A DNA stretch of 64,000 nt, taken from contig CDMY01000460.1 of the NCBI GenBank assembly GCA_001179505.1, forward strand, positions 1 to 64,000, in the 5' to 3' direction. A program made the position numbers and the translations under genes. The notes under the pieces are model-generated. The model did not search any database. It was given only the letters and a program-made list of their open reading frames with translations, and was not told the origin of the DNA. The stretch comes from Vitrella brassicaformis CCMP3155. Taxonomy: Eukaryota; Protista; Chromerida. This document shows positions 1 through 63,527 of this stretch, piece by piece. The stretch's first letter is position 1. Each line of letters begins with the position of its first letter.

Positions 1-80
1 ATCACCTGGAAGCTTTGTATACCGTGCATTCAGACCTGCCATCCATCCATTTGTCTTTGGGCTGCTCCTCTCCTCACCAT
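1..80 (-). repeat. Dispersed cassette copy a (partial)
   Basis: atcacctggaagctttgtataccgtgcattcagacctgcc matches 5894-5935 and 58496-58540. Confidence 0.8.
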
Positions 81-130
81 CGCGGCCCCTGCGGGCGGTG
101 ATAGTGATGGGGCGTTTTCTCTTTTGGTCG
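1..130 (-). pseudogene. Fragment of the FunK1-like kinase family (exon ending ...GEERSSPK plus cassette intron), running off the left edge
   Basis: 1-80 (atcacctggaagc...ccatccatttgtctttgggctgctcctctcctcaccat) is nearly the same as 58496-58570 and 59730-59805, which lie inside kinase copies. Confidence 0.55.
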
Positions 131-676
131 GTTACCGATGTGGGGGAAATGGCGCATGCTGCTGCCGGGCTCTGCTCGCCGAATGTGTCGACCTAGACAG
201 AGACACGAAGATCCCGATTGAAAGGCCTGGATCCATCTCATTGTTTACCGTTGACAGGGTCTCGTACCCTCGAGGGAGGGCATGCCGGCGCTCTCCAGCA
301 GCAGCAGCAGGCTGGGCGGCAGCAGCAGCAGCAGCACGGATGGCATGCAGGTGGGCCAGAGTCTACAACAATCCATCAATCCATCCACCACATCACACAG
401 CCCGTATACACCTCTCGCACTCCCATTTCCCGCCCTTGTGTACCTGGCGTGCTGCTTGTCGTCCGGCCTTATCCGTCATGTCGATGACGGACCCTGCCCT
501 GCCATCCGCTGCTTCAGCAGCAGCAGCAGGAGTCTGCCGGCCCCCGACAGCATGATCCTCCAAACCAGTCGCCCGTGGCCGAGTGTGGAACGGCCGCTGG
601 CGATGACGACGAAGGTCGCCCGGGCGATCTGGCTTGGACGGGAGCTGACCAGCAGATCCTGAAGGCACAGACACAA

Positions 677-1084
677 TTAGAAAGACAGAGATCTTTCATG
701 AATCCAACGCCATGCGATATAGGTCTTTTCATTTTGGCCCATCGGACATCGCTTCTCCTCCTTTCTCACCCTGATTGAGGGGAGATGGCCGTGCTGCGCG
801 CATAGTCCTCCCTGATCCGGCTGGCGGGGCGGTTGTGTGGACGAGAGAGAGGGACAGCGAATGATGTCGAGCTCACTGGCGGCTGTCGTCTCCTCTTCTG
901 GGCACAGGATGGCCACCACACTGGCGACGAAGAGGGTGGCCATCTCGAAACACATGAGCCCAAGCCCCAGTGCCGCCGTGACAGCGCTGCCTGCCGCCGT
1001 GACAGCCATGGCCCCACCGGCCGTCACTGCCGCTTTGGTGGCGAGGGCGGCGCCGACAGCGAAGATGGTCTCGACGAAGGGCAT
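677..1084 (-). CDS. Hypothetical small Ala/hydrophobic-rich protein (MPFVETIFAVGAALATK...)
   Basis: ORF 677-1084 has GC3-rich codons and a long hydrophobic N-terminus, directly downstream of cassette b. No recognisable domain. Confidence 0.3.
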   Translation of the reverse strand: MPFVETIFAVGAALATKAAVTAGGAMAVTAAGSAVTAALGLGLMCFEMATLFVASVVAILCPEEETTAASELDIIRCPSLSSTQPPRQPDQGGLCAQHGHLPSIRVRKEEKRCPMGQNEKTYIAWRWIHERSLSF

Positions 1085-1140
1085 CTCGGTGGGCCGACAT
1101 GAAGGGGAGGCGAGAGAGAGAGACTAGGATGGAGGGAGGG

Positions 1141-1285
1141 GGCTGCGTGAGAAAGGAAAACAATTCCCCTCGCGATATAAAATGTAACCAGCGATAGCCA
1201 CTGCACACAAACAGACAGAGACATAAGGCCAGATCACCTGGAAGCTTTGTGTGTTTTGCGTACCTGCTTGTCTTCAACCCGCTCG
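1141..1285 (-). repeat. Dispersed cassette copy b
   Basis: Minus strand: GAAGACAAGCAG|GTACGC...GTGATCTGGCCTTATGTCTCTGTCTGTTTGTGTGCAG|TGGCTATCGCTGGTTACATTTTATATCGCGAGGGG...TTCTCACGCAG. Extended match to 5960-6105. Confidence 0.9.
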
Positions 1286-1344
1286 ACACACACATCGACC
1301 ACCCCCCTTATTCAGCAGCATCACCACTAGCACCACTAGCACAT

Positions 1345-2160
1345 GCATGTGTGTATAGAGTTGGTTGCAGCTGTCGAAATCACACCGTACACATCAGAAA
1401 TCACATTCCATCCATCATACTTATCCCCTCATGCCTATCTATTCCCCTCTCCCTCTCCCGGCTCGCCCGCTCTAGCTGCATGTGTCTGTGTGTGTGCGTA
1501 GTTCAGTAGCGGGCCTTCTTCTTGCACTGGGCGTAGAAGTCGCGCGCCGCCTGGGAGGCACACTGCGGGACGAGGGGGCCCAGCTGCTGCTTCTTAATGA
1601 ACCCGTCCAGCTCCTCTCGGAGGCAGGCGTCGTCCTCGGCCTTGCGCTTCTTCGCGGCCTTGCGCCTTTCCTTGCGGCGCTCTGTCTCCTCCTTGCGGGC
1701 CTTCTCGGCGGCACGTTCGGCGGCGGCCTGCGCTCGGGCGGCCCTGAGCTCCTCCAGCTCCTTCCTCCCGCCCTTGTCGTATGCCTTCTCCTCTTCCTCG
1801 TCCAGGGCCTCGCCGTCGGAGTCCGTGGGGTAGATGATGAGTTCGTCATCGTCGCTCTGAGCAGATAGGCACATACAGGCAGCAGACAGAAAAGGCATTT
1901 GTTTGTCCATCCATCCATCCATCCAGATCTGTCTGTGTCAGATCTGTCTGTGTCAGATCTATGTATCTATCCAGCACACTCACCTCCGACGCGTTGGCCT
2001 TCCCACGTGTGGCCTTCGCCGCCGCCTACAGAGCCAACAAACACACACGTGGGCGCAGGCACGGAGAGATCTGCGCAGGCGGTATTGTCGGCCGACCTTC
2101 TTCTTGGCGTTAGGGTTCACGCCGCGCCGCGCCCGCCCTTCGAATGGCTGTCCAACCCGG
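1345..2160. repeat. ~0.8 kb segment, inverted duplicate of 14620-15490
   Basis: 1381-1500 (cacaccgtacacatcagaaatcaca...tctagctgcatgtgtc) is the reverse complement of 15340-15470, and similarity continues through the coding exon and introns. Confidence 0.9.
1503..2140 (-). CDS. Multi-exon hypothetical acidic/coiled-coil protein (...SDDDELIIYPTDSDGEALDEEE...KKKARY*), copy 1
   Basis: The last exon in ORF 1503-1922 follows a ctcag acceptor. Upstream micro-exons have gt/ag boundaries at about 2000-2130. Confidence 0.5.
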
Positions 2161-2186
2161 GCATGATGCTGACAACAGCTCCTTGG

Positions 2187-3130
2187 TGATGAGTGCTGCC
2201 TTGCTCAGCTCTTCCAGCGCTTCACCTGAGAAGCGACACACACCAAACACACACACGCGCACACACGCTCTCCCCATTCCCTCATATGCTCTCACCTGAC
2301 AACATGCCTCCTGACGACTGATACTTCTGCACGACCACGTCCCGACTGAGGGAACGCACAAATAAAGGCACACGTTGAATGGACAGCTGCAGCGCATTCA
2401 TCAATCCATTCCCCCTCTCCTGCCTCCAATGTGCAACTCTTTGCATACCCTGTCGTGCGGCTATCTCCTCACTGCACTTGGCGATCATCTGAGGCTCGTT
2501 GAGGCAACGCAGCCCGGCAATCTGGGCCTCCACGAGCCGGTCTTCGAGTTTGTTGCGCACATTCACGATGAACGGCACATGGTTCATGAGCTCATTCAGG
2601 TAGTCAGGCTCACTCTCTGCAAACCCCTAACTGAACAACACAGCCGCCAGACAAACACCNNNNNNNNNNNNNNNNNNNNNNNNNNNNNNNNNNNNNNNNN
2701 NNNNNNNNNNNNNNNNNNNNNNNNNNNNNNNNNNNNNNNNNNNNNNNNNNNNNNNNNNNNNNNNNNNNNNNNNNNNNNNNNNNNNNNNNNNNNNNNNNNN
2801 NNNNNNNNNNNNNNNNNNNNNNNNNNNNNNNNNNNNNNNNNNNNNNNNNNNNNNNNNNNNNNNNNNNNNNNNNNNNNNNNNNNNNNNNNNNNNNNNNNNN
2901 NNNNNNNNNNNNNNNNNNNNNNNNNNNNNNNNNNNNNNNNNNNNNNNNNNNNNNNNNNNACCTTCTTAGGCCCTCCCACGCATCTGTCGCAGCCGGGCGT
3001 TGAAGTGGTTGAAGATGGATCTGCCAAGGGCCACTCGCGGTAGGCCTCTTGGTGGCTCTCCCCGACAGATGTACCAGTGGCTTGGCCGAAGTTATGTTCG
3101 CCTCCATCGATGAGCTCCTGGACACACAAA
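2187..3130 (-). pseudogene. Gap-interrupted paralog of the 6756-7530 hypothetical gene
   Basis: 2621-2659 is identical to 6928-6966. 2960-3040 encodes SGPWQIHLQPL.RPAATDAWEGL, as at 7100-7170. Confidence 0.55.
2660..2959. other. Assembly gap (300 N)
   Basis: Run of N. Same-size gaps at 21281-21580, 49979-50278, 59087-59386 and 63528-63827. Confidence 1.
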
Positions 3131-3218
3131 AAATGGTCACACAGATGAGAACGTGAGAATGACTTCATGTGTACATGCTCTCTCTTGACTCGCTTACCTG
3201 CTGCCCACGCAAACCGAA

Positions 3219-3320
3219 AGAAATTCTTTCAGGATATAAGATGTAGACAGCGATATCCACTGCAGACAAACAGACAGAGACACAAGGGCAGATCACTTGA
3301 TGCCTTTCTGTACCGTCCGC
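3219..3320 (-). repeat. Dispersed cassette copy c
   Basis: Minus strand: GTGATCTGCCCTTGTGTCTCTGTCTGTTTGTCTGCAG|TGGATATCGCTGTCTACATCTTATATCCTGAAAG, followed by a CAG|GTAAGC donor. Confidence 0.9.
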
Positions 3321-3780
3321 CTGCATCAAGATGCAACACAACAACGCGAGGAAGAAGAATCCGAATTGGCCGTTCTGTTATGTCAATTCGTGTGGGAATC
3401 GACGGCCACCTGCGCCACCGGCACTCGGGCCTTGGTGGCTGTCGTGCGTGTGGAAGATCATGATTCTGCACACAGACAGAGAAGTGGGAAGAGTTGCAGA
3501 CACATCAATGGCAATTGTGTGCATGTTCCCGAGCAGCATGATGTATGCTCACCTGATGATAATGGTCAAGCCATCGCAGCAGCACAGCGGTATGGGGCTC
3601 TCGACTCCCTCGCTCTCTTAAATGACACCGGCAGCTCCTCCGAGTGAACGTCGAGCCACTGCAGGCACACGACACAACACAAGAGGCAATAGGTATGGAT
3701 GGAAGAGTGTGTGAGCGGATGGTCTGTGTGTGTGCGCGTACATCGAGAAGGCCACAGAACTGTGTGTATTTCTGGGTCGT

Positions 3781-3880
3781 CTCCTCTCGCGATATAAAAT
3801 GTAAACAACGATATCACTGCAGACAATCAGACAGACGGAGACACGAGGCCGGGATCACTTCTTTCTGTGTGCTTACGTAC
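3781..3880 (-). repeat. Dispersed cassette copy d
   Basis: Minus strand: GTGATCCCGGCCTCGTGTCTCCGTCTGTCTGATTGTCTGCAG|TGATATCGTTGTTTACATTTTATATCGCGAGAGG. Confidence 0.9.
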
Positions 3881-3889
3881 TGCACACTC

Positions 3890-4200
3890 CATGCCACTGG
3901 TGCTGCTCGCGGTGGCGCTGGCGGGGTGGTGATGGTGCCGCCCAGCTGTGGGCCCTTCTCGCCCGTGTCCTCGCCGCACACGTGCTCCCCCTTGCCCTGC
4001 TGGTCGTCTGTGGCGTCAGCGGACGGCTGCACGACAACAGACTCACCTACAAACAACCAGAACAGAAGAACCACACACGTGTCAGATGCAGGCAGGTAAG
4101 CAAATGTCATTCGTGCCTGGTCTTGCCGGCTCACCGTCGGCGGGGGGCTGAGGGCCGATGAGCTCCCGAATGCTCCGGAAAGCCCTGTCCTCTCCCCAGC
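3890..4200 (-). pseudogene. Remnant of kinase-family N-terminal exons
   Basis: ACCACCCCGCCAGCGCCACCGCGAGCAGCACCAG (3897-3930) also occurs at 61490-61525. The intron at 4080-4140 matches 63370-63440, and ELIGPQPPAD matches ELIGPQPPSD at about 61710-61740. Confidence 0.65.
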
Positions 4201-4240
4201 CTCGTCGACAACAGAACTAGCCATAGCCCCCACACCACTG

Positions 4241-5480: not shown

Positions 5481-5550
5481 CATCCACCACATGGACTGAC
5501 ATAAGAGAGAAAGGTGCGACACATGGACGGTTTCAATGTGTATGGGTGTC

Positions 5551-5581
<31 letters not shown>

Positions 5582-5849: not shown

Positions 5850-5940
5850 GCGATATCTAGTGCAAAGACAAACAGACAGAGACACAAGGGCAGATCACCT
5901 GGAAGGTTTTCTGTACCGTGCATTCAGACCTGCCATGCAT
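5850..5940 (-). repeat. Dispersed cassette copy e (core truncated)
   Basis: Minus strand: GCACGGTACAGAAAACCTTCCAGGTGATCTGCCCTTGTGTCTCTGTCTGTTTGTCTTTGCACTAGATATCGCCGTC. Confidence 0.85.
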
Positions 5941-5959
5941 TCATCAGAGCTGGGAAATA

Positions 5960-6105
5960 TGCGGGGCCTGCGGGAAAGAAGTCCTCTCGCGATATAAAAT
6001 GTAGACAGCGATATCCACTGCAGACAAACAGACACACAGAGACATAAGGCCAGATCACCTGGAAGCTTTGTGTGTTCTGCGTACCTGCTTTTCTTCAACC
6101 CGCAC
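5960..6105 (-). repeat. Dispersed cassette copy f (consensus-like), tandem with e
   Basis: Minus strand: AAGCAG|GTACGC...GTCTGCAG|TGGATATCGCTGTCTACATTTTATATCGCGAGAGGACTTCTTTCCCGCAG. Confidence 0.9.
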
Positions 6106-9704: not shown

Positions 9705-11063
<1,359 letters not shown>

Positions 11064-14050: not shown

Positions 14051-14070
14051 TCATTCTGCAGACCAAACAC

Positions 14071-14619: not shown

Positions 14620-15330
14620 TCCCCGGGTTGGACAGCGAGGGATGCGAAGTGCGGGCGCGGCGTGAACCCTGACGCCAAGAAGAAGGTCGGCCGACAATAC
14701 GGCCTGCAGATCTCTCCGTGCCTGCGCCCACGTGTGTGTGTTTGTTGGCTCTGTAGGCGGCGGCGAAGGCCACCCGTGGGAAGGCCAACGAGTCGGAGGT
14801 GAGTGTGCTGGATAGATACATAGATCTGACACGGACAGATCTGACACAGACAGATCTGACACAGACAGATCTGACACAGACAGATCTGATACAGACAGAT
14901 CTGGACGGACGGACGGATGGATGGATGGACAAACAAATGCCTTTTCTGTCTGCTGCCTGTATGTGCCTATCTGCTCAGAGCGACGAAGACGAACTCATCA
15001 TTTATCCCACGGACTCCGACAACGAGGCCCTGGACGACGAAGAGGCGGAGGAATACGACAAGGGCGGGAGGAAGGAGCTGGAGGAGCTCAGGGCCGCCCG
15101 AGCGCAGGCCGCCGCCGAACGTGCCGCCGAGAAGGCCCGCAAGGAGGAGACAGAGCGCCGCAAGGAAAGGCGCAAGGCCGCGAAGAAGCGCAAGGCCGAG
15201 GACGACGCCTGCCTCCGAGAGGAGCTGGACGGGTTCATTAAGAAGCAGCAGCGGGCCCCCTCGTCCCGGAGTTTGCCTCCCAGGCGGTGCGCGACCACTA
15301 CGCCCCGTTCAACAAGAAGACCCGCTGCTG
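14620..15330 (+). pseudogene. Acidic/coiled-coil gene copy 2 with 1-bp deletion
   Basis: Inverted paralog of 1503-2140. Copy 2 has cagcagc-gggccccc where copy 1 has cagcagctgggccccc, which shifts the C-terminal frame. Confidence 0.6.
14818..14905. repeat. 15-bp intronic minisatellite (cagatctgacacaga)n
   Basis: About 6 units here versus about 3 at 1925-1960. Confidence 0.85.
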
Positions 15331-16313
15331 AACTACGCACACACACAGACACATGCAGCTAGAGCGGGCGAGCCGGGAGAGGGAGAGGGGAATAGAATAG
15401 GCATGAGGGGATAAGTATGATGGATGGGATGTGATTTCTGATGTGTACGGTGTAATTTCGGCACTTGCAACCAACTCTATACACACATACACATAATATA
15501 CACACATACTCATGGATGGATGGATTGATGGATGGACGAGCACACCGCCTACATACACGACTGTCCACCCCTCTGCAACACAGCGCTGCTGCTATGACAA
15601 CTGACTGATTTTTTCCCTCGTGTCGAGTTACCTAGCTGACCGGGGCCACCGACCAGCACAAAAAACAACCTTTGGCGTTACTGAACGCCACCATGTGATG
15701 CGCATTGACAGGCGGCTGGGCTGGCTGCCTGTATGAATGATGCTTTGGGTGGGTGCGTAGCTTGGGGTGGGTGGACGGTAGGTGTGTGGGGTGGTCAGTC
15801 ATGTATTCATTGACCAACACGCACACACGCACACACGGACAGGTGTCTGTCCACACACACACAGAAGATGGATGGATGGATGCCACAGGCAGGCAGGCAG
15901 GCAGACATATAGACAGTGACGGCCCTTCCTTCCACCATGCGGATGCACGGACAGACAATCTGATCGATATCCACAAACGCTTGCTGGCCAGCTGGCTAGC
16001 TCTGATCTCTCGCTCCGTCGCTTGCTCGCCCCAACGCTCCTCCCACTCTCTCTGGCGACAGACGGCCACACACGACAGCACAACCCACCTACATACATCT
16101 TGTGTTGGCCTGCCTGCCTGCCTGACTGCTTACTTGGTTGTTTATTGGTGTGTGCTGTCCTCCTTGCCTCCGCCATTGTCCTCTACCGCCATTGGCGCAT
16201 CCTCTGCGACAATCCATCCACACAACCGGAGGTAGAGAGGGAGGGAGGGAGTTTGTCGAATGCCGATTGCAGACAGACACGTGGATGGATGGATGGATGG
16301 ATGCTCATACAGC

Positions 16314-21231: not shown

Positions 21232-21599
21232 CTGCAGGGGAGTGGAGAGCGCACGCATGAAGATAGATGGCGTGCAGGGGNNNNNNNNNNNNNNNNNNNN
21301 NNNNNNNNNNNNNNNNNNNNNNNNNNNNNNNNNNNNNNNNNNNNNNNNNNNNNNNNNNNNNNNNNNNNNNNNNNNNNNNNNNNNNNNNNNNNNNNNNNNN
21401 NNNNNNNNNNNNNNNNNNNNNNNNNNNNNNNNNNNNNNNNNNNNNNNNNNNNNNNNNNNNNNNNNNNNNNNNNNNNNNNNNNNNNNNNNNNNNNNNNNNN
21501 NNNNNNNNNNNNNNNNNNNNNNNNNNNNNNNNNNNNNNNNNNNNNNNNNNNNNNNNNNNNNNNNNNNNNNNNNNNNNNNNATAACCATCCAGCCACACG

Positions 21600-27849: not shown

Positions 27850-30800
27850 TGCTACATGAGAACAAGGCAGTTAGCTGACCTTTCAATGGAGGGTTGTAGA
27901 CTTATGTGTAAAAGACATGCAGACTCACGATTGCGAATTGATGGACTAAAGAGTCTTCCATGGATATAAAACGTTGGCAGCGACCCAGCATAAATAAACG
28001 TGCGCCCACAACACACCCACCCCACAAGTAGATGCAGTGCGGGATAGTCACCACCTCCGGCACATATAAAATGTAGGCAGCAATCGAATCGATAGGCGCT
28101 GCAGTGGGGCAGATCATGTTTTCGTGTCTCTTGCCTGTCTGTCTGTCTCCCTGGCTGGCTGCATGTCTCTCCCCTCTCGGCTGTGGCCAGACGTCCGGCC
28201 TCCTGAATGGCGCGTTGGAGCTCCTCGGGCGAGGTGGCTGGGTCGACGGACAGCTCGCTGGCCTCCCGGACGGCCTCCACCTCCTCGTTGAGGGGGGCGT
28301 CGAAGCACCGGTCGTATGCGGGCGGACGGTCCTGACCAACGGGCTTGAAGAACTTCGAGTGCGGCCCCCCAGCGGGTCGAACCTGTTGCCGTCGGCGTTC
28401 CTCAGCATGTGCATGTGGGGGGCCAGCAACAGGTTGGCCAGCAGCGAGCACAGTGAGTAGGTGTCGGCCGTCCGGCTGGACGGACCCACGATGGCTGTCC
28501 TGTCACCACTGCCACTGCTGCTGCTGCTGCTGGCGCCCTGGCCGATGATGCGGAGGAGGCTGGCGGCTGCTCGAATGTTGGCGGCTGGGTCTGTGTGGGG
28601 CGGGTTGACGGGGGGCGGGGTGATGTCGCTTGGGCGTGTCGGCTGGGGCGAGAGGGGCTGCTCGGCAATGCCGATGTCCTGGGCCATCTCCAGGTCGATC
28701 CACCGGCCTCTCAGCTCACCCTTCGTCCCCTCCTCCCCTTGACTCGTGCAGGTGGGCCGCCACTCGACCAGCACGTTATTGCCGCTGGCATCCCGGTGCA
28801 CCAGGCCGCCGCGAAGATCTCCGCCTGCGACACGAGCAGAGACAGGGCCAGCGAGCGGATGTGGTGGGGGGCGATGCCGAGCTCTTTGAGGGTGGTCTGC
28901 AGGCGCTTGATCTTGTTGACGAGGCAGTTGGCTGTCGGCAGGTCGGCCCTCGCAGCAAAGAGGTCCGTGAGCGAGACGCTGTTGGACCAGATGGGGTCCT
29001 CCTCTGCCGCTGTGGTGACCTCCTGCTGGTCGTCATAGGGGCTGATGCTGTCGGCCTCCCACTCCTCGTCGCCATCGGCCTCGTCCTGCTGCTCAGCTGC
29101 CGCCCTGGAGGCCGCAAGGGTTTCGGCGCTGATGCACAGCTCCATCGGCCGCGGGCAGAAGTCGGGGGAGGCCAACATGGCGTCGCACACAGGCAAATAA
29201 CAGACAGACACGTGGAAGAGCTGCGAATGTGTGTAAATGTGCCGTGTGTGTGGCGACCCACCGGCTGCCCTGCCCATCGAAATGCCGCCAGTCTCCTTCC
29301 GCGACGACTGTGGCTTCGAGGCGGTCTTGCGGTGGCGCAGCCGCTCGGCAACAGAGGGCGTCAGGAAGCCTGGAGTACACAACGCAATGCAACTCAACGG
29401 GGGAGTGCGTTTGATGTCCGCGTCTGTGTGCGTCTGTGTGTCGGCTGTGCTTACTTATGTATTCTGATATGGATATGTAGAAGTGCCCCTGGATGCCCAT
29501 GACCACCCGCTTGTAGGCCGCGTTGGGGCGGTCGGCCAGGTCCTCAGGCACGCGTGTCTTGTCGATGATGATGTAGTCGTGCCACTCCTTGGGCAGCAGC
29601 CGAATGGGCAGGACTCCCGTCGTCGGCGCCAGGCTGCCCCTCGCGCCCCCTCGGGCCACTCGAGTGACTGGTGGTCGGCGGGGACGCTGCCGGACGCCTT
29701 CAACGCGGCCGTGATACCGCCGCCGCGGGCTGACAGGCGCTTGATGGCCTCCACCTCCCTCAGGATGGTGCTGCTGGCGTCCTCTGGCCGCTGGGCGAAG
29801 CCCAGGGGGATGTCGCACTTGAGGACGACGCGCTGCCCCGACGCCAGGTGGCCCTCGATTATGGCAACTTCGCTGCTGTACTGCAGCATAAAGCGGCCGG
29901 CGGGGCTGAAGACTGACAGGACATCCAGTGCCGTCGCCTCTGGTGTGCCCGCCGCCTCTTGTGTGGGTCCGTCAGTGGCCGGCCCGATGTGTGCGTGGCA
30001 AAGAAAGAGAGAAGCGCCGTCTGGCGCAGCTCCCTCATCGTCGGTGTCGCCCTTTCCTTCTGCTGGGAGTGGTGCCGACTTACCGGACGCCTTGGTCCGC
30101 GGCACCGGCTCGTCGGCCATCTTGCACAGGCGGTGGTTGCGGCCGCGGTCCTTGACGGGCGTATAGCGGTTGGAGAACATGCTGTCGCGCACCGAGTTGC
30201 AATACGAGCCGTACTCGGGCCGCCTTTTGTGCAGACCCGCCACAAACTGCAGACACACAGAGAGAACAAGAGAATGTATTGATGCAGACAGACACCTGGT
30301 GTGACAGACAGGAGACCATACCCACCTCGTTGATCTGAGGGTAGTTTGTGCTGTTGATGTTGCCGCCGGGGATGTCGTTGTGGCACACGAAGAAGCTGGA
30401 TGAGTGTGTAGTTGATGGTCATGTGCGTGGCAAACACGCAGGCCATCGACTCGGCCTCCGCCATGTGCTCCTCAAGCAGCTTGAACACGCCCGTGAAGGA
30501 CTTCTCCAACTGCACACACACACACACACACACACGCATCCATCCATCCACCCGTCATCAGCCATGATTGCCTGCCCACCTTGACTATGTTCGTCCGCCG
30601 CGTTTTGGTGAGATTGTCGTTCGTCCTGCCGGCTATCATCTCGCTCCTCGCCTGCGCCACATAGCCGTCCACCAAGTTGTGCAAACAGCCGGTGGCATGA
30701 GCCATATTGGCGAAGAGCTCGTCCTTCTCCCAGCTGGCCGCTGCGGACTCTGGCTGCGCCGTCGATGCACGGGATGAGTGGGGGTGGTGCGAGAGCGCTC

Positions 30801-47827: not shown

Positions 47828-50800
47828 ATGATGGCGGCGCAACCTGCACAAGCATCATCGTCGTCATCAGCTGCAGCAGCGGCACCAGCACCACATGTAT
47901 GTGGGCAGCTGACACACACACACACACACACACAGTGTGTCATCCTTTAATGAGCTCTGCCTACGTCGGTCGTTTGTTCGTTTCACCAGGGGGCGCCATG
48001 CCGTGGGCCGTGTGGTTACCAGAAGGGCAGTCGTGTGTGGGTGGTGACGGAGAAGCGGGACGAGGGCGAGCAGGAGTGGGTCAAGGCGGACGTCTACCGC
48101 ATCGACGGGAGGACGGTGTACATGCGGGAGGTGGGCGGCGGGGAGGGCTTCAAAGTCACTGTGCCGACCAAGACCATTCCGCCCACAGAGCTGACGCCAC
48201 ACGCGGTGAGCAAATGAACGACAAGATGATTGACCCACTGGTCCACTCATGTTTCCGTTCTGTCTGAGTGCAGGTGTGTGACGGCTTCCGTTATCTCCGC
48301 TCAGGGACGCCGCTCAAGGAAACACACTACGGCAGCAAGAAGGTACACACACACACCCCTACACTCACAGCACACGGATGTCCGGTCTGTTCACCGTTCA
48401 TCATTCCTTCCCCTCTCCCCCTGTCAGGCCGTTGACCGTCTCGGCAATGACGAGTTGGCATCGCTGTTCGGCTTTTTCAGCCCTTGCGAGCTGTCCGCCC
48501 TCTTCTCACACCGCTCCCCCGTCCGCAACGGAGCTGTCCAGCAGCACAGCCACATCACCATCGACGCATCCACGCCCGCCGAGTGTCAGTTTTGGACCAG
48601 CACGACCACACAGGACGCCTTCAAGCTCGGCAGACGGCTGACCAATCTGACGTCCGCTCACGTGGTGCAGCCACACACCCATCTGGAATGGTGCGTGAAG
48701 ACATTGACGGCCGTCGTGGAGGGCCATGCTGCGGGCCGCCGGGCGGCGCGGGAGAGGGAGAGCTCCATCGAGTCCATCCACTTCAGCTGCCCGACCGACG
48801 TCCGTGCCGGCCAGGTGTCCATCCCGGCCCCGGCATCCTTCTCTCCCCCTCCCCTCTCCCCGTGTCCAGCTGCCGTCCCTCAAGAGCATCACGGGCCTTC
48901 GTGAAGCCCACGAGATGCTCGAACGGGGCTTGGTGATGCCTCACCTGGAGGTCGTGACCACGGGAGGAACCTTCAGGCTTGCGACGGACGACTTCGTCCG
49001 CTTTCTGCGGCAGCTGATCAAGACGTCTTGGTCCCTGAAGCGGCTGGCCGTGGGTGGGCTTCGTCGCAAGGCGACGCTCTGCGTCCTAGCGGGCATCCCT
49101 GAGGGCGAGAGGGGGGAGAGGGGGCCGCTGGCGGGGCTCGAGCATCTGTCGACGGTTTACCTGGGACCCAGGGAGGACTTCGAAGAACTTCAGGCAAGTA
49201 GAGGGAAGGCGTCGCAGAGCTCACACATCATTGTGCTGTGTCGGTCTCCTCTTCAGAGGCTGTTGGTTTCTCGCGGCTGCAAGCAGTCAATCCGCCATCT
49301 CGGGGTTGGCAGCGCCGTGCCTTTACGGGACCTTCCACGAGGGGAGCGTCATTGGCTCCATTCCCTCAAGCCCTTCGCCGAGGCAGTCGCGTCGCCCTCC
49401 GTCGACATCGAGTGCTGCCTGCCCGCTGTGGGCTGCCTCAACACATTCCTCGATTCGGCATTGCTCAACACGCCCTCCCTCGCCAAGCTCCTCCAGGCCA
49501 TGGCAAAGGGGGCCGGGACGACCGGCCCATTCGGTGGCCCGGAGGGGGACGCCATCACACTGGAGGTCACGCAGGCCATCGTCGACGGCAGCAACGACGT
49601 GATGGGGCCCCTCACCGAGAGGGCGCAGCAGACGGCAGCCAGACTCACATTCGAGAAGGTGAAGAAGGTGGTGATCTGGGCGCCGGAGGGTCTGGACATC
49701 CCCGAGGACTTCCCTCCCCCTTCCATCCCCGCACTCCAGCACCTGTCGCCCCAGGCATTCCCCAACGCGACACAGCTGTTTGTGGGAGCAAGACCCGTCG
49801 GTCCCCAGGGGCCCCAGGCAGCTGCGGATCTCACGAGCCGGATGCCGGCGCTCGACCACCTGACACTCACGCCTACTGCACCTGACACCGTCGACATGCT
49901 GAGATCGATCGGCGACCGAGTGCCACGCAAGGTGCAGCTGGAGGGTTTTCACATGGGCCTTCCACCCCCCCCCCCCAANNNNNNNNNNNNNNNNNNNNNN
50001 NNNNNNNNNNNNNNNNNNNNNNNNNNNNNNNNNNNNNNNNNNNNNNNNNNNNNNNNNNNNNNNNNNNNNNNNNNNNNNNNNNNNNNNNNNNNNNNNNNNN
50101 NNNNNNNNNNNNNNNNNNNNNNNNNNNNNNNNNNNNNNNNNNNNNNNNNNNNNNNNNNNNNNNNNNNNNNNNNNNNNNNNNNNNNNNNNNNNNNNNNNNN
50201 NNNNNNNNNNNNNNNNNNNNNNNNNNNNNNNNNNNNNNNNNNNNNNNNNNNNNNNNNNNNNNNNNNNNNNNNNNNNNNCCCCCCCCCCCCAATCCACTGC
50301 CCCCTGCGTCTCTGCCCCGCGTCAAGCACCTGTTGGTCATGGGCACTCAGGGCATGTCTGCGGCCAAGGCGGCGGTGGCCGGCATGAGCTCACTGGATGA
50401 GGCGATAGTGGACACGGCTGGTGTAGCAGGGTTGCTGACGGCGATGGGCGGCGGGCGGACGCTCAAGTCGCTGCAACTTACCTTTCATCCACGTAGTTTC
50501 CGCGCCCTCGAGTCTGCTGATCTGACCCACCTGCCCAAAGTTGAACGCGTGTTTGTGCCAGGTACACAACAAGTGCGTCACTCTTCTTCACATCTGTTCG
50601 CTTTCACACAGTTTTCGATCGTACCGTCTGGCCTGCTGCCGATGTCCTTGCCGGTGTGAAGGCCTTGTGCCGTCTGCGAGACCTGCAGCGGTTCGAGCTC
50701 TTCCTCCCTGAGGCACCCGAGGACCGCATCGGTGGCCCTAGAGACCCCATCCACGTGTTGTTGGGCGAGATGCAGCAGCGACACGGCACGACACTGGGCA

Positions 50801-56653: not shown

Positions 56654-56748
56654 TCGCATGTATTATCGATTGGTTGACTGACGAACGTCCAAGTAGAATG
56701 TGCTCAGATGACATGACCTTCACATGACTGTCTGAGGTCACCGCATGT

Positions 56749-57530
56749 TCACGTCAATTCAAAATCAACATCGCGCACACAGACATCGTCACTGCAAACG
56801 ACCAACCCGATATAAAATGTAGGCAACGATGTGTCGCTGCCGTCACCCATCGCCACTTCTCCCCGCCACGCCACACGCCTGCCAGTGCGGACCTCCTCGG
56901 CGATGCAGTAGCACTGCCGCAACTCCTGTCTCACAAAAATGTCCGTCAGATCCTGCGATTCTCCGTACAACCGCAAGTCACCAACTGAACAAGCACAGGA
57001 AAATCCCTCATTCAGGCGAAGTGTCAATCTTGCTCATGCTGGTTTGTCTTACTGTCCAGGTCCCGGAGCGAGCTGTGCTTGGCCTGCACCTTCAGGAGAC
57101 AGGGCAGCCGCGTTGGCGTCCTTGGTGGGGCCGAAGGGAGACAGCACTTGTGCGATGGTGGCGGGGGATAGGTTGTCGCTCAGCCCGTCCGTGAAGACCA
57201 CGATGCAGTCCTTGTCTTGGACGGGCACACTGGCGACGCTCATGCCCTGCTGCGTCTTCAGCTGGTCAGCTGTTGGGGTGGGGGGGGGCGTGCCGTCGCT
57301 GCTGGTGGCGGGTGGCAGCATGGCCAGCTGAAGGGGGCGGTTGGGCTCGGTTGGATCCACCATAGGGGCCGTCCGGTGGATCTCCCAAGGCCTTCCCGAG
57401 ATGAGGGGCGACGGAGGACCATGGCGCCCGAGTCGCCAAAGTTGGCGATGTCGGCGGAGATGGACCCGTCGGCCTCCTCACTCAATGCCATCCCAACTGC
57501 CGTGGTGCCGCCCACACGCCCGGGGGGGCT
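56749..57530 (-). pseudogene. PTC7-like PP2C phosphatase fragment with 1-bp frameshift
   Basis: GGTTAV...IANFGDSGAMVLRR, PNRPLQLAMLP and IVVFTDGLSDNL. Frame break at about 57390 (restoring one base gives GLWEIHRTAPMVDP). The N-terminal DG motif is absent. Confidence 0.75.
56806..56835 (-). repeat. Cassette core copy i
   Basis: Minus strand: CATCGTTGCCTACATTTTATATCGGG. Confidence 0.6.
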
Positions 57531-57625
57531 GCGTGAGAAGTGAAAGAAGTTCCTGTCGCGATATAAAATGTAGACAGCGATATCCACTGCAGACAATCAG
57601 ACAGAGACATAAGGTTATATCGTTT
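57528..57625 (-). repeat. Dispersed cassette copy j
   Basis: Minus strand: CCTTATGTCTCTGTCTGATTGTCTGCAG|TGGATATCGCTGTCTACATTTTATATCGCGACAGGAACTTCTTTCACTTCTCACGCAG. Confidence 0.9.
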
Positions 57626-57781
57626 AGACGCCCTTCTGTGCCGCACCACCATTTGCAGCAGCGCCACCCTCCCTTTCCCCCCCGACCATCTCCTGCGCCA
57701 GCAGTCGCTCGATGCTCAGCCGCTCGGCCTCCTTTGGCGCCATGCCGCCTTTGATGAGGCGAAGGGCCATGGAAAGGTCTA

Positions 57782-59086
57782 TCACCGGCTCTCCTCGGCC
57801 ATTGCCTCCTGCCGCGCCTTCTCGGCTTCTTCGTCGGCCACCGCCCTGAGCAGGACGTAGTCCTTCTCACTGTGGGCTGACTGGCCGTCCTTGATGGTGG
57901 TAATGGCCTTCTCGACGGTCTGCACCAGCCAGTCGTGGCGGTTCTGGGCCTTCTCGGCTTTGATCACCCTCTCAGCCTTCTCGATGGTCTTAGCGATGGC
58001 CTGCAGCTCAGGCTTCTTGGGAGCGGAGAGGCGAATGGGCTGTCGCACCAGGTTGGTCTCCCGCTGGAGGGGCCTGCTGAAGTACTGCGTGAATGCTGGC
58101 CACACCCCCTGATCGCAGAAGAAGAGCTGGTTCCTCCTCTTGGCGCCATAGTAGTCGCCGGCATTGTTGTGGATTTGGTCCATGTGAGGGCGAGGAGCAG
58201 GTGGACGAGCAATGAGCAGAGTTTGTAGGTGTCGCTCGACCGACTCACAGGACCAAAGTGGGCGCCGCCGCTGCTGCTGCTGCTGCTGGTGATGTTGTTG
58301 AGGACGTTTTTGCAGGGAGCACTTGTAGCCCCGTCTCGTCATCCGCTGATGGTCTGTGTGTGTGCTCGCGTATTTTGTGGTCGTCCCTTGCAGACACGGG
58401 GTCGCGATGAAAAGGGAGCAAATTCCTCTCGCGATACAAAATGTAGCCAGCGATATCTCCTGCAAAGACAAACAGACAGAGACACAAGGCTGGATCACCT
58501 GGAAGAGCTTTCTGTACCGTGAGTGCATTCATCCATCCATTTGCCTTTGGGCTGCTCCTCTCCTCACCATGGTGGACTCCTGCAGCGGTGGTGGTGGTGG
58601 TGGTGGGGCGTTGATGGTGGGGCTTCGACGGCCTTGACCGTCGTGGGAGGGGGCTGGAGGGGTGACTCGGTGTCGGTGACGGGTCCGGGACAGCTCGAAT
58701 TCGATCCACCTCGCTCCCAGCTCGCCCGCCACCCCACCCTGCACCGTGCTGGTCGGCCGCCACTGGATGAGGACGTTGTTGCCGCTGGTGTCGCCGTGCA
58801 CCAGGCCGCTGTCCTCCCCCGCACCGCTGGAGAAGATGTCGGCCAGTTCGCGCAGCAGCGACACTGCGAGCCGGCGGAAATGGGGGCCCGTGACTCCCAG
58901 ACGTGCCAGCGTAACCCGCAGGCGCCGCCTCCTGTTCTCGAGAGGGTCGGGGTCGGAGTCCTTGAACATGCGGGCTTCGATGAGATCGAAGAGGCTGACG
59001 ACGTCCGTGCACAGTTCAGGATCGTCCCCGTCGTCGCTCTCGTCGCCGTCATCGGCCTCCTCGACCTCGTCGTGACCCGCGTTGCC
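57782..59086 (-). pseudogene. FunK1-like kinase C-terminal half (copy B1)
   Basis: VSLFDLIEAR, LVHGDTSGNNVLIQWRP, RWIEFEL and SDTYKLCSLL. 1-bp deletion at LLLA(P)HMD, about 58185. Confidence 0.75.
58420..58570 (-). repeat. Dispersed cassette copy k
   Basis: Minus strand: CCAAAG|GCAAATGG...GTGATCCAGCCTTGTGTCTCTGTCTGTTTGTCTTTGCAG|GAGATATCGCTGGCTACATTTTGTATCGCGAGAGG. Confidence 0.9.
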
Positions 59087-59656
59087 NNNNNNNNNNNNNN
59101 NNNNNNNNNNNNNNNNNNNNNNNNNNNNNNNNNNNNNNNNNNNNNNNNNNNNNNNNNNNNNNNNNNNNNNNNNNNNNNNNNNNNNNNNNNNNNNNNNNNN
59201 NNNNNNNNNNNNNNNNNNNNNNNNNNNNNNNNNNNNNNNNNNNNNNNNNNNNNNNNNNNNNNNNNNNNNNNNNNNNNNNNNNNNNNNNNNNNNNNNNNNN
59301 NNNNNNNNNNNNNNNNNNNNNNNNNNNNNNNNNNNNNNNNNNNNNNNNNNNNNNNNNNNNNNNNNNNNNNNNNNNNNNNNNNNNNNGCCATAGTAGTCGC
59401 CGGCATTGTTGTGGATTTGGTCCATGTGAGGGCGAGGAGCAGGTGGACGAGCAATGAGCAGAGTTTGTAGGTGTCGCTCGACCGACTCACAGGACCAAAG
59501 TGGGCGCCGCCGCTGCTGCTGCTGGTGATGTTGTTGGGGACGTTTTTGCAGGGAGCACTTGTAGCCCCGTCTCGTCATCCGCTGATGGTCTGTGTGTGTG
59601 CTCGCGTATTTTGTGGTCGTCCCTTGCAGACACGGGGTCGCGATGAAAAGGGAGCA

Positions 59657-59805
59657 AATTCCTCTCGCGATACAAAATGTAGCCAGCGATATCTCCTGCA
59701 AAGACAAACAGACAGAGACACAAGGCTGGATCACCTGGAAGAGCTTTCTGTACCGTGAGTGCATTCATCCATCCATTTGCCTTTGGGCTGCTCCTCTCCT
59801 CACCA
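59657..59805 (-). repeat. Dispersed cassette copy l
   Basis: Essentially identical to copy k. Confidence 0.9.
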
Positions 59806-60994
59806 TGGTGGACTCCTGCAGCGGTGGTGGTGGTGGTGGTGGGGCGTTGATGGTGGGGCTTCGACGGCCTTGACCGTCGTGGGAGGGGGCTGGAGGGGTG
59901 ACTCGGTGTCGGTGACGGGTCCGGGACAGCTCGAATTCGATCCACCTCGCTCCCAGCTCGCCCGCCACCCCACCCTGCACCGTGCTGGTCGGCCGCCACT
60001 GGATGAGGACGTTGTTGCCGCTGGTGTCGCCGTGCACCAGGCCGCTGTCGTCCCCCCGCACCGCTGGAGAAGATGTCGGCCAGGCCTTCGCGCAGCAACA
60101 CTGCGAGCTGGCGGAAGTGGGAGCCCGTGACTCCCAGACGTGCCAGCGTAACCCGCAGGCGCCGCCTCCTGTTGAGGGGGTCGGGATCGGGATCGTCCTC
60201 GTCGTCGCTCTCGTCGCCGTCATCGGCCTCCTCGACCTCATCGTGATCCGCGTTGCCCTCGTCTCGCGGCTCCAGCAGCTTGGCCTCTGCGGCCAGCTTC
60301 GCACACTGCTCCGGGGTCAGGACCTCCTTCATTGGCACGCCTCGCGTCTCGCGCAGGTAGCGCTTCCTCCACTGGGCCATGTCCTCACCGGGTGACGCTG
60401 CAGGCAGGAGGGCAGCACATGACACACACATCATGCGATGCGATACGATACGCAATTGACGATACGCTGTGCGCATAAACTCCTCGTGCATTGGTCTGAG
60501 CGATGTGTGTCTGTCTGTAGACCCACCTTTTGGCAGGGAAGATGACGGTCTGGGCCGGCGCAGCTCCTCCGCTACTACTGGTGGCAGAAAAAGCTGCATA
60601 ACACAGAGCGAAATCCAACACACAGCGAAATCCATCCATCCATCCATTCACTGCTTTCTCTTTCCGGTCTGCGTATGGCGTTGGTCACTTACCGATTCGC
60701 TCTGCCATGTAAAAGAGCCCCCTCACTCCCAGCACGCCGTCCCTCGTGCCCGGCTGCTCCCCGCAGCGAATGGGAAAGAGGCCCGGCTCTCCATCCGCCC
60801 CCTTTAGGCCACCCCTTTGCCATGGCCGCACGTATGGCCGCCTGCCGTCGGCCGGCACCTCCCCGAAGGCCGTCAGGGTGGCTGTCAGGGTGCTGCGACG
60901 GGCGGCCAGCTGCTGCATGGCCGCCACTCCCCTCTTGACGGTCGCGCTCAGACGAAGGAGGTCATCTGGGCTTAGCTCTGGAGTGCCCGGCGCG

Positions 60995-61135
60995 AAAAGG
61001 GAAAGAAGTTCCTCTCGTGATATAAAATGTAAACAGCGATGCCTACTGCAGACAAAGGGACAGAGAGGGACACAAGGCAGACACACATTCAGATCACTTG
61101 GACGTCCTCGTGTGCTGCAAATACCTTCTTTGTCT
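60995..61135 (-). repeat. Dispersed cassette copy m (inside kinase N-lobe)
   Basis: Minus strand: GAAGACAAAGAAG|GTATTTG...GTGATCTG...GTCTGCAG|TAGGCATCGCTGTTTACATTTTATATCACGAGAGGAACTTCTTTCC. Confidence 0.9.
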
Positions 61136-61807
61136 TCTGAGGGTGCCACTGACTGAAGGAGGTCTTGAGGGCTGAGCTCCGGAATGCCGGGCACCGTCTC
61201 CTCCTTCCTGTTGACGGTGGCCGTCACCGCCGCGATGCCTTTGGGCACCGGGCACTTCAGCACTAGCCTCCGCCCCGCCGACTTGCCCTCGGCGATGGCA
61301 AAGCTGTCGCTGTAGTGCAGCATGCGGCGGCCAGCCGTGCGAAAGCTGGAGAGGGTGGCCAGCGAATCGACTGATATGGCCGCCGCATGCTGTGTGGGGG
61401 AAGCGGGGACGATTTGGGCGTGGGGCAGAAGGGGCGAGGAGCCGTCGGATGCCGCGCCCTCATCGTCCATGTCGGCCGCCGCTGGCGAGGCTGGTGCTGC
61501 TCGCGGTGGCGCTGGCGGGGTGGTGGTGGTCTTGTCCCCCTCCTCTGCCCCACTCGGCTCCTCGAGGCTGCCCTGGTGGTCGGCTGTGTGGCTGGCAGGT
61601 GCATCGGGCTCGACAACACGGTCGCATCTGAATGAACGAAGGCACAAAGGAAGCGACGCTAGATATGCGAAAGCAAATCTCATTCATTTGTGGTCTCGTC
61701 GGCTTACTGTCAGATGGCGGTTGAGGGCCAATGAGCTCCATGAACGCAACAGAGAGCTCCGCCCCCTTCCCAATCTGACGCTGGAACCCGGGGGCCGCGA
61801 TGTCAAT

Positions 61808-61920
61808 GAAAGAAATGAGACTCAGGATATAAAATGTAGCCAGCGATGTTTGCTGCACACACACAGACGGAGACACGAGGCTATGTCATTTGGAAGCTTT
61901 TGTGTATCCTGCATACCTTC
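61808..61920 (-). repeat. Dispersed cassette copy n (between kinase copies)
   Basis: Minus strand: GAAG|GTATGC...AAAGCTTCC...GTGTGCAG|CAAACATCGCTGGCTACATTTTATATCCTGAG. Confidence 0.85.
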
Positions 61921-61951
61921 GGGACTCATTGGTGCGTTCCTGTCCTCATCA

Positions 61952-63470
61952 TCACCAATGTCCTCCTACTTGCTCCACGAGCTCATGGGCGTCGAGAAGG
62001 GCCCTGTCCACTGACTGCAGCAACCAGGCGTGCCGCTTCTGGGCCTTCTCGATGGTCACCTTCGTCTTGGTCTCGGCGATGGCCTCTTGGAGGCTCGTGG
62101 CGGGGAGGTCGAACAGGTCGCGGACGGCTTCTGTCTCCTTCTCGAGTGGCGCCTCGAAGCGCTTCTTGAAGGTCGCGCCTCGGAAGAATGTCTGCCACTG
62201 GTTCGGCTTGTTGGTGTAGAGTGTGCCGTCCTTGTTGATCAGCCGGTCCATGTGTGGCGCCAGCAGCAGATGGGCGAGCAGCGAGGTCGCGCTCGCCCTT
62301 CTGGCCATGGAGGGTATCGATGAGGTCCCCGATGGAGACGGCGTCTGTCCATAGCTCGTCCAGCACGGCGTCGTCGTCCTCCTCCTCCTCCTCCTCGTCG
62401 CTCTCGTCGTCATCGTCACCCTCGTTGTAGTCCAGCAGCTCCCTCCTGAGCTTGACGACGGCCGCTCTTCCGCCGGTGTAAGCTGCAAAAGGGCAGACAA
62501 ACACACACAATACAATACAATACAATATGACGGTCACGAACCCGTTCGTTAATATGAGTGTCCTGTGTGTGTGCATGTAGGTGCATGTCATATCTCTGTC
62601 AACCCACCTGCTGTGAGTGGCTTCTTCCCGCGCTGACGCAGCTCCTCCTCGACTGCTGGTCGCAGCTGCTCCACTGCTGCCGGCGGCAGAAAAGCTGCAT
62701 TACATGAACGGAAAGAAGGCAAAGTGGGATTCATGACGCAGGCATCTCCGGTTGTCCGGTAGGCTTACCTATGTATTTTGACATATAGAAGAACCCCCTC
62801 ACGCCCACGACCTTCTTCTCAGAGCGACAGACCACCCTCACCGGGAAGCGCCCCGGCGCCCTCTCGGCGCTGCCCGCCCTCGTCCCCTTCGGCCACAGCC
62901 ACTCGCGATCTGCCGGGATGGTGCCGGACGCCACCAGTGCGGACGCGAGCGTGCTGCGGCGCGCCGTCAGCTCGAGGATGGCCTTCACCTCCTGCAGCTG
63001 CTCCTCTGTGAGCTCGTCCAGCCCCTCAGGGACGGCGCATTTGAGGATGACGCGGCCGGCAGCCGAGTGGCCCTCCAGGATGGCGAAGTACTTGGGGCTG
63101 TGGTGGACGAGGCACCTTACGGAGGGGCGGAAGGTGGAGAGGATGGCCAGCGACGCCTCCTCTGATGTGTCTGCCGCCTCCTGTGTGCGCGCGTCAGAGG
63201 CCGGTGCGTTGTGGATGTGGGGCAGCAGTGGCGAATAGCCGTCAGACGCACCGCCCTCGTCCTCGGTGTCGCCTTTCCATGACGATGCGCTTCGGCGTCT
63301 CCTCGCCGTTCGTGTCCTTCTGCTTGCCCTGCTCGTCGGCAGGAACAACAATCGCAGGAACAACACACACACCTCAGATGCCGGCAGGCAAGGAAATGTC
63401 ATTCATGAACACTGTTGTCTTTCCGGCTCACCGTCGGCTGAGGATTGAGGGAGAGCTTGAAGTGGGAGAC
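61952..63470 (-). pseudogene. FunK1-like kinase (copy A) lacking the catalytic core
   Basis: AGRVILKC...QEVKAI, GVRGFFYMSKYI and acidic insert are present. VSIGDLIDTL then jumps to SLLAHLLLAPHMD, with no HxD or DxE segment. Confidence 0.7.
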
Positions 63471-63474
63471 ATGC

Positions 63475-63527
63475 GGGGCTGCGTGGAAGAAGTCCTCTCG
63501 CGATATAAAATGTAGACAGCGATATCC
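63475..63527 (-). repeat. Dispersed cassette copy o (into gap)
   Basis: Minus strand: GGATATCGCTGTCTACATTTTATATCGCGAGAGGACTTCTTCCACGCAG. Confidence 0.9.

Follow-up and report, generated by a model that had tools for sequence, protein, structure and literature searches.

Why should a short sequence recur, always on the same strand, among divergent kinase-like genes and unrelated neighbours in the chromerid Vitrella brassicaformis? The question was raised by a 64,000-nt stretch of DNA (strain CCMP3155, contig CDMY01000460.1, positions 1 to 64,000), hereafter the window, in which a first-pass annotation had described about 15 co-oriented copies of a splice-site-bearing cassette. It had read the cassette as a nucleotide-level element, acting either as a mobile intron or exon-shuffling module or as a recombination hot spot that joins domain cassettes. 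The strict orientation held: a search with a 13-nt core, allowing two mismatches at most, gave 13 matches in the window, all on the minus strand, where 0.07 would be expected by chance, and two further copies are partial. The latter had been placed at about 1 and 5850; both are real, although one is the intron part only and the other has a truncated core. The features are listed below, and the 13 matches start at the first coordinate of each core entry other than the partial one.

1..40, minus strand: 5' part of the cassette intron; the contig ends inside the cassette.
1174..1195, minus strand: 22-mer core in a cassette at 1155-1282, past the stop of an unrelated gene (about 1503) and ahead of a membrane-protein gene that starts at about 1083.
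3233..3254, minus strand: 22-mer core, TACATCTT variant, upstream of an unrelated gene; the predicted exon that contains it is 62 nt long.
3791..3812, minus strand: 22-mer core; the predicted exon around it is 75 nt long and coincides with the break-off point (3897) of an N-terminal kinase-like fragment.
5860..5905, minus strand: partial cassette, with the 3' half of the intron and a truncated, diverged core.
5991..6012, minus strand: 22-mer core in the most complete cassette (5951-6103), about 370 nt past the C-terminal fragment of a kinase-like gene.
27963..27984, minus strand: a further core past the 28063 copy, 100 nt away and more degenerate (4 mismatches).
28063..28084, minus strand: core beside the decayed remains of an intron, where a solitary kinase-like gene has its 3' end.
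56809..56830, minus strand: core-only copy at the array end, facing a convergent RecQ-type gene, with no unit after it.
57560..57581, minus strand: 22-mer core just past the C-terminal end of a kinase-like gene, upstream of a weak PP2C-like fragment; cassette 57540-57650.
57640..61740, minus strand: one long kinase-like gene with two cassettes within and a third after it; frame breaks in the assembly.
58433..58454, minus strand: near-identical twin of the 59669 copy (97% over 816 nt), on the other side of the gap at 59087-59386.
59669..59690, minus strand: 22-mer core, TTTTGTAT variant, in the linker of a kinase-like gene, with a long upstream intron; cassette 59657-59848.
61019..61040, minus strand: 22-mer core; its cassette (about 60975-61135) interrupts a kinase-like gene in the N-terminal part; DNA unitig 60676-61431.
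61826..61847, minus strand: 22-mer core that lies in a spacer, with a kinase-like unit on either side; cassette about 61782-61925; DNA unitig 61496-62019.
63502..63523, minus strand: 22-mer core with 0 mismatches to the consensus; the 5' side of the cassette is cut by the gap at 63528-63827.

Misassembly had been named as a concern from the start. The junctions at 61019 and 61826 are not misassemblies, as DNA unitigs of independent runs span both. The gap at 59087-59386 is flanked by two 97%-identical 0.8-kb blocks that contain the 58433 and 59669 copies; these were counted as one independent copy because no DNA contig bridges the gap. No cassette is touched by the gaps at 2660-2959, 21281-21580 and 49979-50278.

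The conserved unit is a sharply edged 22-mer, ATCGYTGNCTRCATTTTATATY, found in 36 copies in the approximately 205 kb examined, which comprised the window contig and five other contigs. All five of these contigs also bear the same divergent kinase-like family, and none of the >100 kb of sampled non-island sequence contained a copy. The 22-mer follows the gene strand in 36/36 copies across the six contigs, and copies within genes are accordingly in sense. Unitig depth over the core is approximately 7-9 times that of single-copy sequence. Once the other contigs are added, almost no information is left in the flanks of the 22-mer, and no further enriched 11-mer was found as a companion motif. Position 8 varies freely, substitutions among the copies are mostly transitions, and the 3' half (CATTTTATAT) is rich in A/U. 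No frame of the core contains a stop codon, and its reverse complement, read directly in the sequence, includes TATAAAA. A viral or metagenomic origin of the element was considered and rejected, as the matches were single and at chance level only. No telomere repeats were detected at the ends of the island-bearing contigs.

Translation does not explain this conservation. Between them, the gene models read the core in all three frames, and the would-be synonymous sites are invariant and no freer than the others; an ordinary conserved coding exon was rejected on these grounds and on the many non-orthologous positions that the element occupies, so that the first-pass view of a nucleotide-level element was borne out. 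No codon periodicity was detected in the flanking windows. Coding-like windows make up 42-44% at -480 to -180 relative to the core, fall to 3% at +30 to +180 (of the 36 copies, one has coding-like sequence in the 150 nt that follow) and rise to 36% at +330 to +480, a trough that places the core closer to the end of the upstream coding block. The annotated fusion proteins cross the core in frames other than the conserved kinase frame, and several of the islands' "fusion" proteins are probably artefacts of gene prediction across a spacer that is non-coding yet open. Moreover, the array was absent from the single RNA run examined, which does hold neighbouring genes. These observations give no sign that the cassette joins protein domains productively, and the 22-mer probably marks gene ends and is not part of a protein.

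A strong 3' splice site was found at most 20 nt upstream of the core in 21 of the 36 copies, compared with 3.9% of random positions, and donor sites downstream of the core were not enriched. At several loci, a plausible donor does follow the core, and the gene models turn it into an internal mini-exon (31 nt in L004 and 74 nt in L003). The GT...AG intron and the tail are homologous within the window contig only, where the donor end and the tail vary and the columns with least variation are those of the acceptor tract and the core. The splice-bearing consensus described in the first-pass annotation is thus valid within that contig, whereas only the 22-mer is common between contigs; the ATATCGC direct repeats reported around the core are likewise present in a subset of the window-contig copies but are not general. 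Past the core there is a U-rich tract, where T accounts for 38% of the bases at +10 to +20, compared with an overall 20% (P = 0.0006). A comparison with non-island genes, which rests on three motif occurrences, found TTT[AG]TAT three times in 5.9 kb of 3' flanks, with no sense-strand occurrence across 45 kb of gene bodies and 5' flanks.

The islands contain co-oriented, divergent kinase-like genes together with orphan genes. The kinase-like assignment rests on a profile search against solved structures and on a protein atlas; Pfam gave no match for the large reading frames, the family proteins or the island genes. A look for transcript-derived members found none, as all nine family proteins were singletons from the reference genome. 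Two solitary kinase-like genes, one in L007 and the other at 28063 in the window, have their core at the 3' end, with no copy upstream; the distance from the stop codon to the L007 core is 28 nt. Among the kinase-like genes, the one that is intact and has no more than a single intron lacks a core, and the units that follow a core contain introns.

Cassettes that are approximately 90% identical occur in unrelated contexts of one contig, including inside kinase coding sequence, where paralogs differ in their presence at three sites and the gene resumes after the insert. Flanking duplications surround two inserts, one of 36-60 nt and one of approximately 15 nt, both diverged; the former brackets the cassette at 61019, and paralogs lack a cassette at the same site. 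Cassettes are also found at rearrangement junctions, and the types of flank on their two sides, left and right, are reassorted. It should be noted that the reassortment was read directly from the sequences, as a flank-identity matrix gave an unreliable metric. Breakpoints are also found outside the core, for example at 5950 and 3897 in the window. Copying into unrelated contexts and the association with rearrangement junctions, both part of the original description, are therefore retained, but neither transposition nor a dedicated recombination mechanism is established, given the low copy number and the absence of terminal inverted repeats shared by the copies.

Taken together, the cassette is best read as a copy-prone, non-coding 3'-end module, formed by a last intron and a terminal exon that starts with the signal, whose copies also seed rearrangements; we assign this reading a probability of approximately 0.38. 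We infer splicing, a 3'-end function and a role in recombination from sequence features. The order of the module would be a short spliceosomal intron, a 3' splice site, a 22-nt RNA-level signal 0-15 nt further on, a U-rich tract approximately 10-20 nt later and then 150-300 nt of non-coding spacer. The transcript of the upstream unit would splice into the short terminal exon, where the 22-mer and the U-rich tract may direct or regulate 3'-end formation or mRNA fate. Whole modules of approximately 130-200 nt have been copied to new island sites, among them kinase coding sequence, where a copy would truncate the gene. Since the copies are dispersed, co-oriented and alike, we propose that they are substrates for unequal recombination, which could have produced the mosaic of gene fragments. 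The last array copy (56809), facing a convergent gene, is in line with a 3'-end module. Several observations are less easily accommodated: 22 invariant bases far exceed what known poly(A) signals need, the 22-mer is absent from the neighbouring housekeeping genes, and some copies are internal to gene models as mini-exons. In addition, the next start codon lies 11-30 nt past the core in some array spacers, where a promoter would have little space. A mobile element would account equally well for the copies inside kinase genes.

The main rival, tentative and clearly less probable than a 3'-end module, is an introner-like non-autonomous mobile element with its own splice sites that would insert in sense and be removed in whole or in part by the spliceosome, the 22-mer being a cis sequence for mobilisation. 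It would account for the similar cassettes in unrelated contexts, the presence/absence differences at the three kinase coding sites where the gene goes on after the insert, the duplications around two inserts, the strictly sense orientation and the lack of stops in every frame of the core; furthermore, in silico removal of the GT...AG segment around the 61019 copy kept the frame in both paralogs. However, these duplications are far longer than those that known introners leave, the copies have no terminal inverted repeats in common, and they are few and confined to islands, with none in the >100 kb of neighbouring sequence. What the contigs share is only the 22-mer, on the exon side of the best acceptor, and many copies are intergenic or at 3' ends. 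Unlikely, in our view, is a DNA-level core promoter, a TATA-type element serving either the downstream unit or, through TATAAAA, an antisense transcript across the upstream unit. One oriented copy per unit, often 30-420 nt before annotated start codons, would suit such a role, and the acceptor-like CAG would then be 20-35 nt away, but after the core, the first ATG is no closer and the reading frame no longer than in the background. The full acceptor enrichment upstream and the conserved GT donors point to use at the RNA level, the last array copy and those of the solitary genes have nothing downstream to drive, and the array was not seen in the RNA run. Slightly less likely again is a conserved target, bound by a 22-nt small RNA or by an RNA-binding protein with sequence specificity, through which the island genes would be co-regulated or silenced. 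The exact length of 22 nt, the sharp edges, the predominance of transitions, the sense-only placement in transcribed spacers or 3' regions and the silence of the array in the RNA run all speak for it. No antisense copy or hairpin precursor was detected in the 205 kb, Rfam returned zero matches for the element, and its folding was not better than that of shuffled controls apart from a general AC-rich/GT-rich intron polarity; the adjacent acceptor and the copying of whole cassettes would also be left unexplained.

Two readings that centre on recombination appear improbable, to the same degree. The core could be where site-specific recombination takes place in a cassette system resembling integrons or gene traps, as the co-oriented arrays, the sharp core, the unrelated flanks on both sides and their reassortment would suggest, with the acceptor before each unit perhaps permitting expression from the upstream unit; yet no recombinase was seen in the island loci, the core has no dyad symmetry or fold, breakpoints are not confined to it, its flanks are non-coding, and the array was unexpressed in the one run. 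Alternatively, the 22-mer and its acceptor might form a boundary signal at which promoter-less units are moved, duplicated or reordered, to be expressed by splicing onto the upstream unit. We give very little credence to a spliced-leader relic of the kind found in dinoflagellate retrogenes, or to an ordinary translated exon. The former would share its 22 nt with the dinoflagellate leader (PMC2606063), along with sense orientation and CATTTT, but approximately 0.2 of shuffled sequences align to that leader equally well, the core is not enriched just before start codons, the Vitrella units carry introns, and no copy is directly followed by a donor as in a leader gene; the latter is excluded by the three frames and the invariant synonymous sites.

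Chromerids are free-living relatives of the apicomplexan parasites, and very little is known of the signals behind their gene regulation and genome plasticity. An invariant, strictly oriented 22-nt element at every unit of particular islands offers a searchable handle on array termination, silencing and rearrangement, and bears on whether an alga already had multigene families organised as in parasitic protists. If the cassette-system reading were true, Vitrella would have an integron-like or gene-trap-like diversification of a kinase-like family.

Several known systems resemble these islands in part. The junction of Crinkler effectors, the analogue named in the first-pass annotation, is also a conserved joint between variable modules of a diversifying family, but it is a translated motif in one frame, whereas the Vitrella core is non-coding and is modelled in three. 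Integron attC sites share the co-oriented cassette arrays, the short conserved site and the unrelated flanks; in Vitrella, neither an integrase nor an imperfect palindrome was found, and the arrays are eukaryotic and intron-bearing. In dinoflagellates, a related lineage, spliced-leader relics form a 22-nt sense tag near the starts of retrogenes, in tandem arrays (PMC2606063, PMC6050394). The Vitrella core is likewise a 22-nt sense tag in tandem arrays, but without significant sequence similarity and in units that bear introns. Trans-splicing is not known from chromerids. Introner elements have been described in Micromonas, Aureococcus and dinoflagellates such as Amoebophrya (PMC7789003). They too are short repeated units with splice signals that lie in sense only within genes and have spread to unrelated positions. 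Introners number hundreds to thousands genome-wide, whereas the Vitrella cassette has a few dozen copies in particular islands, no shared inverted termini, a conserved piece on the exon side of the acceptor and many intergenic locations. Trypanosome VSG genes carry a conserved 16-mer in the 3'-UTR and 70-bp repeats upstream, motifs credited with a role in mRNA fate and with setting the limits of recombination tracts. Organism, gene family and sequence are unrelated, the Vitrella motif is preceded by an intron and an acceptor, and the element is not known to be linked to antigenic or phenotypic switching. What the two have in common is an invariant, A/U-rich, family-specific and non-coding motif at the unit ends of pseudogene-rich, co-oriented arrays.

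With the 13-nt inner core as query and up to two mismatches allowed, 13 matches were found in the window, all on the minus strand, where 0.07 were expected by chance; together with two partial cassette copies, they bear out the recurrent single-strand core described in the first-pass annotation. Its consensus was recovered by aligning the copies on contig 460. The array continues past the right edge of the window, with 4 further copies in the 8 kb of L001:1-8165 (the window is bases 1-64,000 of the 72,165-bp contig 460, CDMY01000460.1; L001 is the final 18 kb of contig 460, read in reverse orientation). An exhaustive search with a reading frame of the kinase-like island family gave 8 representatives, in Vitrella only, and 6 additional stretches on other contigs (L002-L007) were taken from their loci.

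Partial cassette copies in the window and core copies in the additional stretches
Window 1-40: partial cassette copy
Window 5860-5905: partial cassette copy
L002: 0 core copies; its family gene is intact and has no more than one intron
L003: 7 core copies
L004: 1 core copy
L005: 7 core copies
L006: 4 core copies
L007: 1 core copy

The core lies on the strand of the kinase-like genes in every copy, on contig 460 and in L003-L007. Across 36 copies, information content is high over exactly 22 positions (ATCGYTGNCTRCATTTTATATY) and approximately zero to either side. Among non-repetitive words in 205 kb of sampled sequence, none is more strongly over-represented than the core 11-mers (23 occurrences on one strand, 0 on the other), and the same scan yielded no companion motif. 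Cores are spaced 0.75-4.3 kb apart within islands of co-oriented genes that had no match in Pfam; neither the housekeeping genes adjoining the islands nor the window outside its two arrays (50 kb) has any core. Because the unitigs at the core add up to a depth of ~7-9x the single-copy level, the cassette family consists of tens of copies, not thousands. Islands with cores in L003, L004, and L006 (contigs CDMY01000255, 179, and 258) lie within 5-46 kb of one end of the contig; these long contigs showed no telomere repeats. Core islands may mark repeat-rich or subterminal regions.

Judged by its sequence, the island family is a predicted divergent protein kinase. The family profile matches the catalytic-loop region of MAP kinases and GCN2 (E = 2e-4), its protein-atlas neighbors are Pkinase clusters, and Pfam returned no match. 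When the intact member P0002 was mapped onto every locus, the core appeared in three settings. It can follow a completed unit, as at the solitary kinase-like gene in L007 (28 nt past the stop codon), at the solitary kinase-like gene in the window (core 28063), and at the last copy of the array (56809), which lies opposite a convergent gene. It can lie within a kinase gene that resumes afterwards, at P0002 residues 215/216, 474/487, and 541/578, sites at which there are paralogs without interruption. Finally, it can lie where a gene fragment stops short and gives way to unrelated sequence (e.g., 3897). According to this mapping, 61740-57640 is therefore a single kinase-like gene, with two cassettes inside it and another at its end. 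The PP2C flank proposed earlier is doubtful: the piece after the last kinase unit (57049-57363, minus strand) matches PP2C_2/SpoIIE at E ~0.1, below the cut-off, is split over two frames, and is at best a degenerate fragment.

Annotated proteins translate the core as DIAVYILYRE, SLATFCIARG, SSPPFYICRLF, RIVAYILYL, NIASYILYS, or GIAVYIFISRE, that is, in three frames plus one indel variant, which confirms that the frame varies between copies. Read as ATC GCT GNC TAC ATT TTA TAT, the core is invariant at all third positions and free to vary at the second base of codon 3. At least two models, P0003 and P0009, cross the cassette outside the conserved kinase frame. Codon periodicity, for which annotated exons scored 73% coding-like and an intergenic stretch 0% in calibration, drops around cores: 14% of windows are coding-like just upstream and 3% in the 150 nt downstream, recovering to 42-44% beyond -180 and 36% beyond +330. 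The core thus sits in a non-coding trough, nearer the upstream coding block. The three frames, invariant third positions, and lost periodicity rule out a translated exon, and the original view of a nucleotide-level element stands. In X5, the one RNA run analyzed, 0.28 of the words sampled from a non-island 10-kb stretch of the window were present and 0.00 of those from the array at 57400-62700, so the array is silent or nearly so in this sample. Annotated genes of 939 and 672 aa string 2-3 units together across cassettes (L001:8764-12679, window 63402-59487; L001:1450-4413); given the missing periodicity and absence from RNA, they look like over-merged predictions. The published gene models were made by Augustus with RNA-seq intron hints (PMC4501334); such hints were probably lacking for the models here.

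In the contig 460 alignment, a GT donor is followed by a short putative intron (65-130 nt) and a GT-rich tract that closes with CAG; five variable bases then precede the core, and the C/T-rich tail behind the core often terminates in CGCAG. The acceptor tract and core are the least variable columns, and the donor end and tail are variable. The intron and tail proposed at first share homology among the copies of contig 460 alone; the other loci carry flank types of their own. Using splice-site matrices trained on 33 introns not adjoining a core, after annotated exon structures were rebuilt, we found a strong acceptor within 20 nt upstream in 21/36 copies versus 3.9% of random positions, an enrichment that recurs in most of the independent flank types of the other contigs; donors downstream of the 36 cores were not enriched. 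T reaches 38% at +10 to +20 versus 20% overall (P = 0.0006; 24 representatives with unrelated flanks). TTT[AG]TAT, part of the core, was counted around 20 non-island genes: their 3' flanks (5.9 kb) have 3 occurrences, and their bodies plus 5' flanks (45 kb) have 0 on the sense strand. After stop codons of non-island genes in L002-L007, TTT[AG]TAT and TGTAT are enriched and AATAAA is absent; the two motifs may be a general 3'-end signal of Vitrella.

Cassettes have been copied at ~90% identity into unlike contexts at five sites.

Cassettes ~90% identical in unlike contexts (window, minus strand)
1174: upstream of a membrane-protein gene
3233: upstream of an unrelated gene
5991: after a kinase fragment
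57560: after a kinase C-terminus
61019: within kinase coding sequence

Flank types are reassorted: copy 5991 has the left flank of 1174 and the right flank of 63502 and L2206, and 57560 has the right flank of 1174 with a different left flank. The 61019 insert is flanked on both sides by a diverged 36-60 nt duplication, and that at 13161 in L003 by one of ~15 nt; no inverted termini are common to the copies. Part of the unrelated gene beside the left-end cassettes has a 0.87-kb inverted copy 13 kb off on the other strand, 85-88% identical (14622-15491, plus strand; relatives at 1344-2161 and L001:392-1191). A 1.3-kb direct duplication (17456-18761/21581-22867, 86% identical) is unrelated to the cassettes, and one copy adjoins the gap 21281-21580.

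The mosaic junctions at 61019 and 61826 are real rather than misassembled, since DNA unitigs of independent runs pass straight through them. Elsewhere, the cassette repeat breaks the assembly. The gap 59087-59386 lies between 97%-identical blocks with one cassette each and no bridging sequence (copies 58433 and 59669 were therefore counted once), the gap 63528-63827 cuts copy 63502, and contig 460 ends inside a cassette. At 58181-58190, the conserved LLLAPHMD frame of the kinase-like gene is broken in the assembly; one contig from DNA run X4 has an extra base at 58187 that preserves it, with seven other differences nearby, and so probably represents a second, unbroken copy or allele, perhaps in the gap. 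Depth over 58600-59000 at ≥95% likeness is normal in X1 (18-21) and very low in X2-X4, from another sample (0-12), which hints at a between-sample difference in copy number or sequence of this duplicated unit.

These facts fit best, at a tentative probability of about 0.38, with a 3'-end module whose copies also feed unequal recombination. The module would comprise the last intron, its acceptor, and a terminal exon opening with the 22-mer, then a U-rich tract and spacer. It would duplicate together with units and occasionally be pasted elsewhere, coding sequence included; the dispersed co-oriented copies would supply homology for unequal recombination, which would explain the mosaics. The length and invariance of the 22-mer, its confinement to islands, the internal mini-exons of some gene models (31 nt in L004), and the closeness of the next start codon to the core in some spacers all speak against such a module.

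Inserts inside genes and flanking duplications would also suit an introner-like mobile element, a doubtful reading given the low copy number, the missing termini, and the position of the core on the exon side. Full-text searches on Vitrella turned up no publication about introners, a nuclear spliced leader, or a motif of this kind. Transposable elements amount to only 1.5 Mb according to the genome paper. A TATA-type promoter, sense or antisense, is unlikely, as no start-codon signal follows the core. A small-RNA or protein target site seems slightly less probable still, and a dedicated recombination site would be a distinctly improbable explanation. Least credible is a spliced-leader relic or real exon: the likeness of the core to the dinoflagellate leader is at the level of chance.
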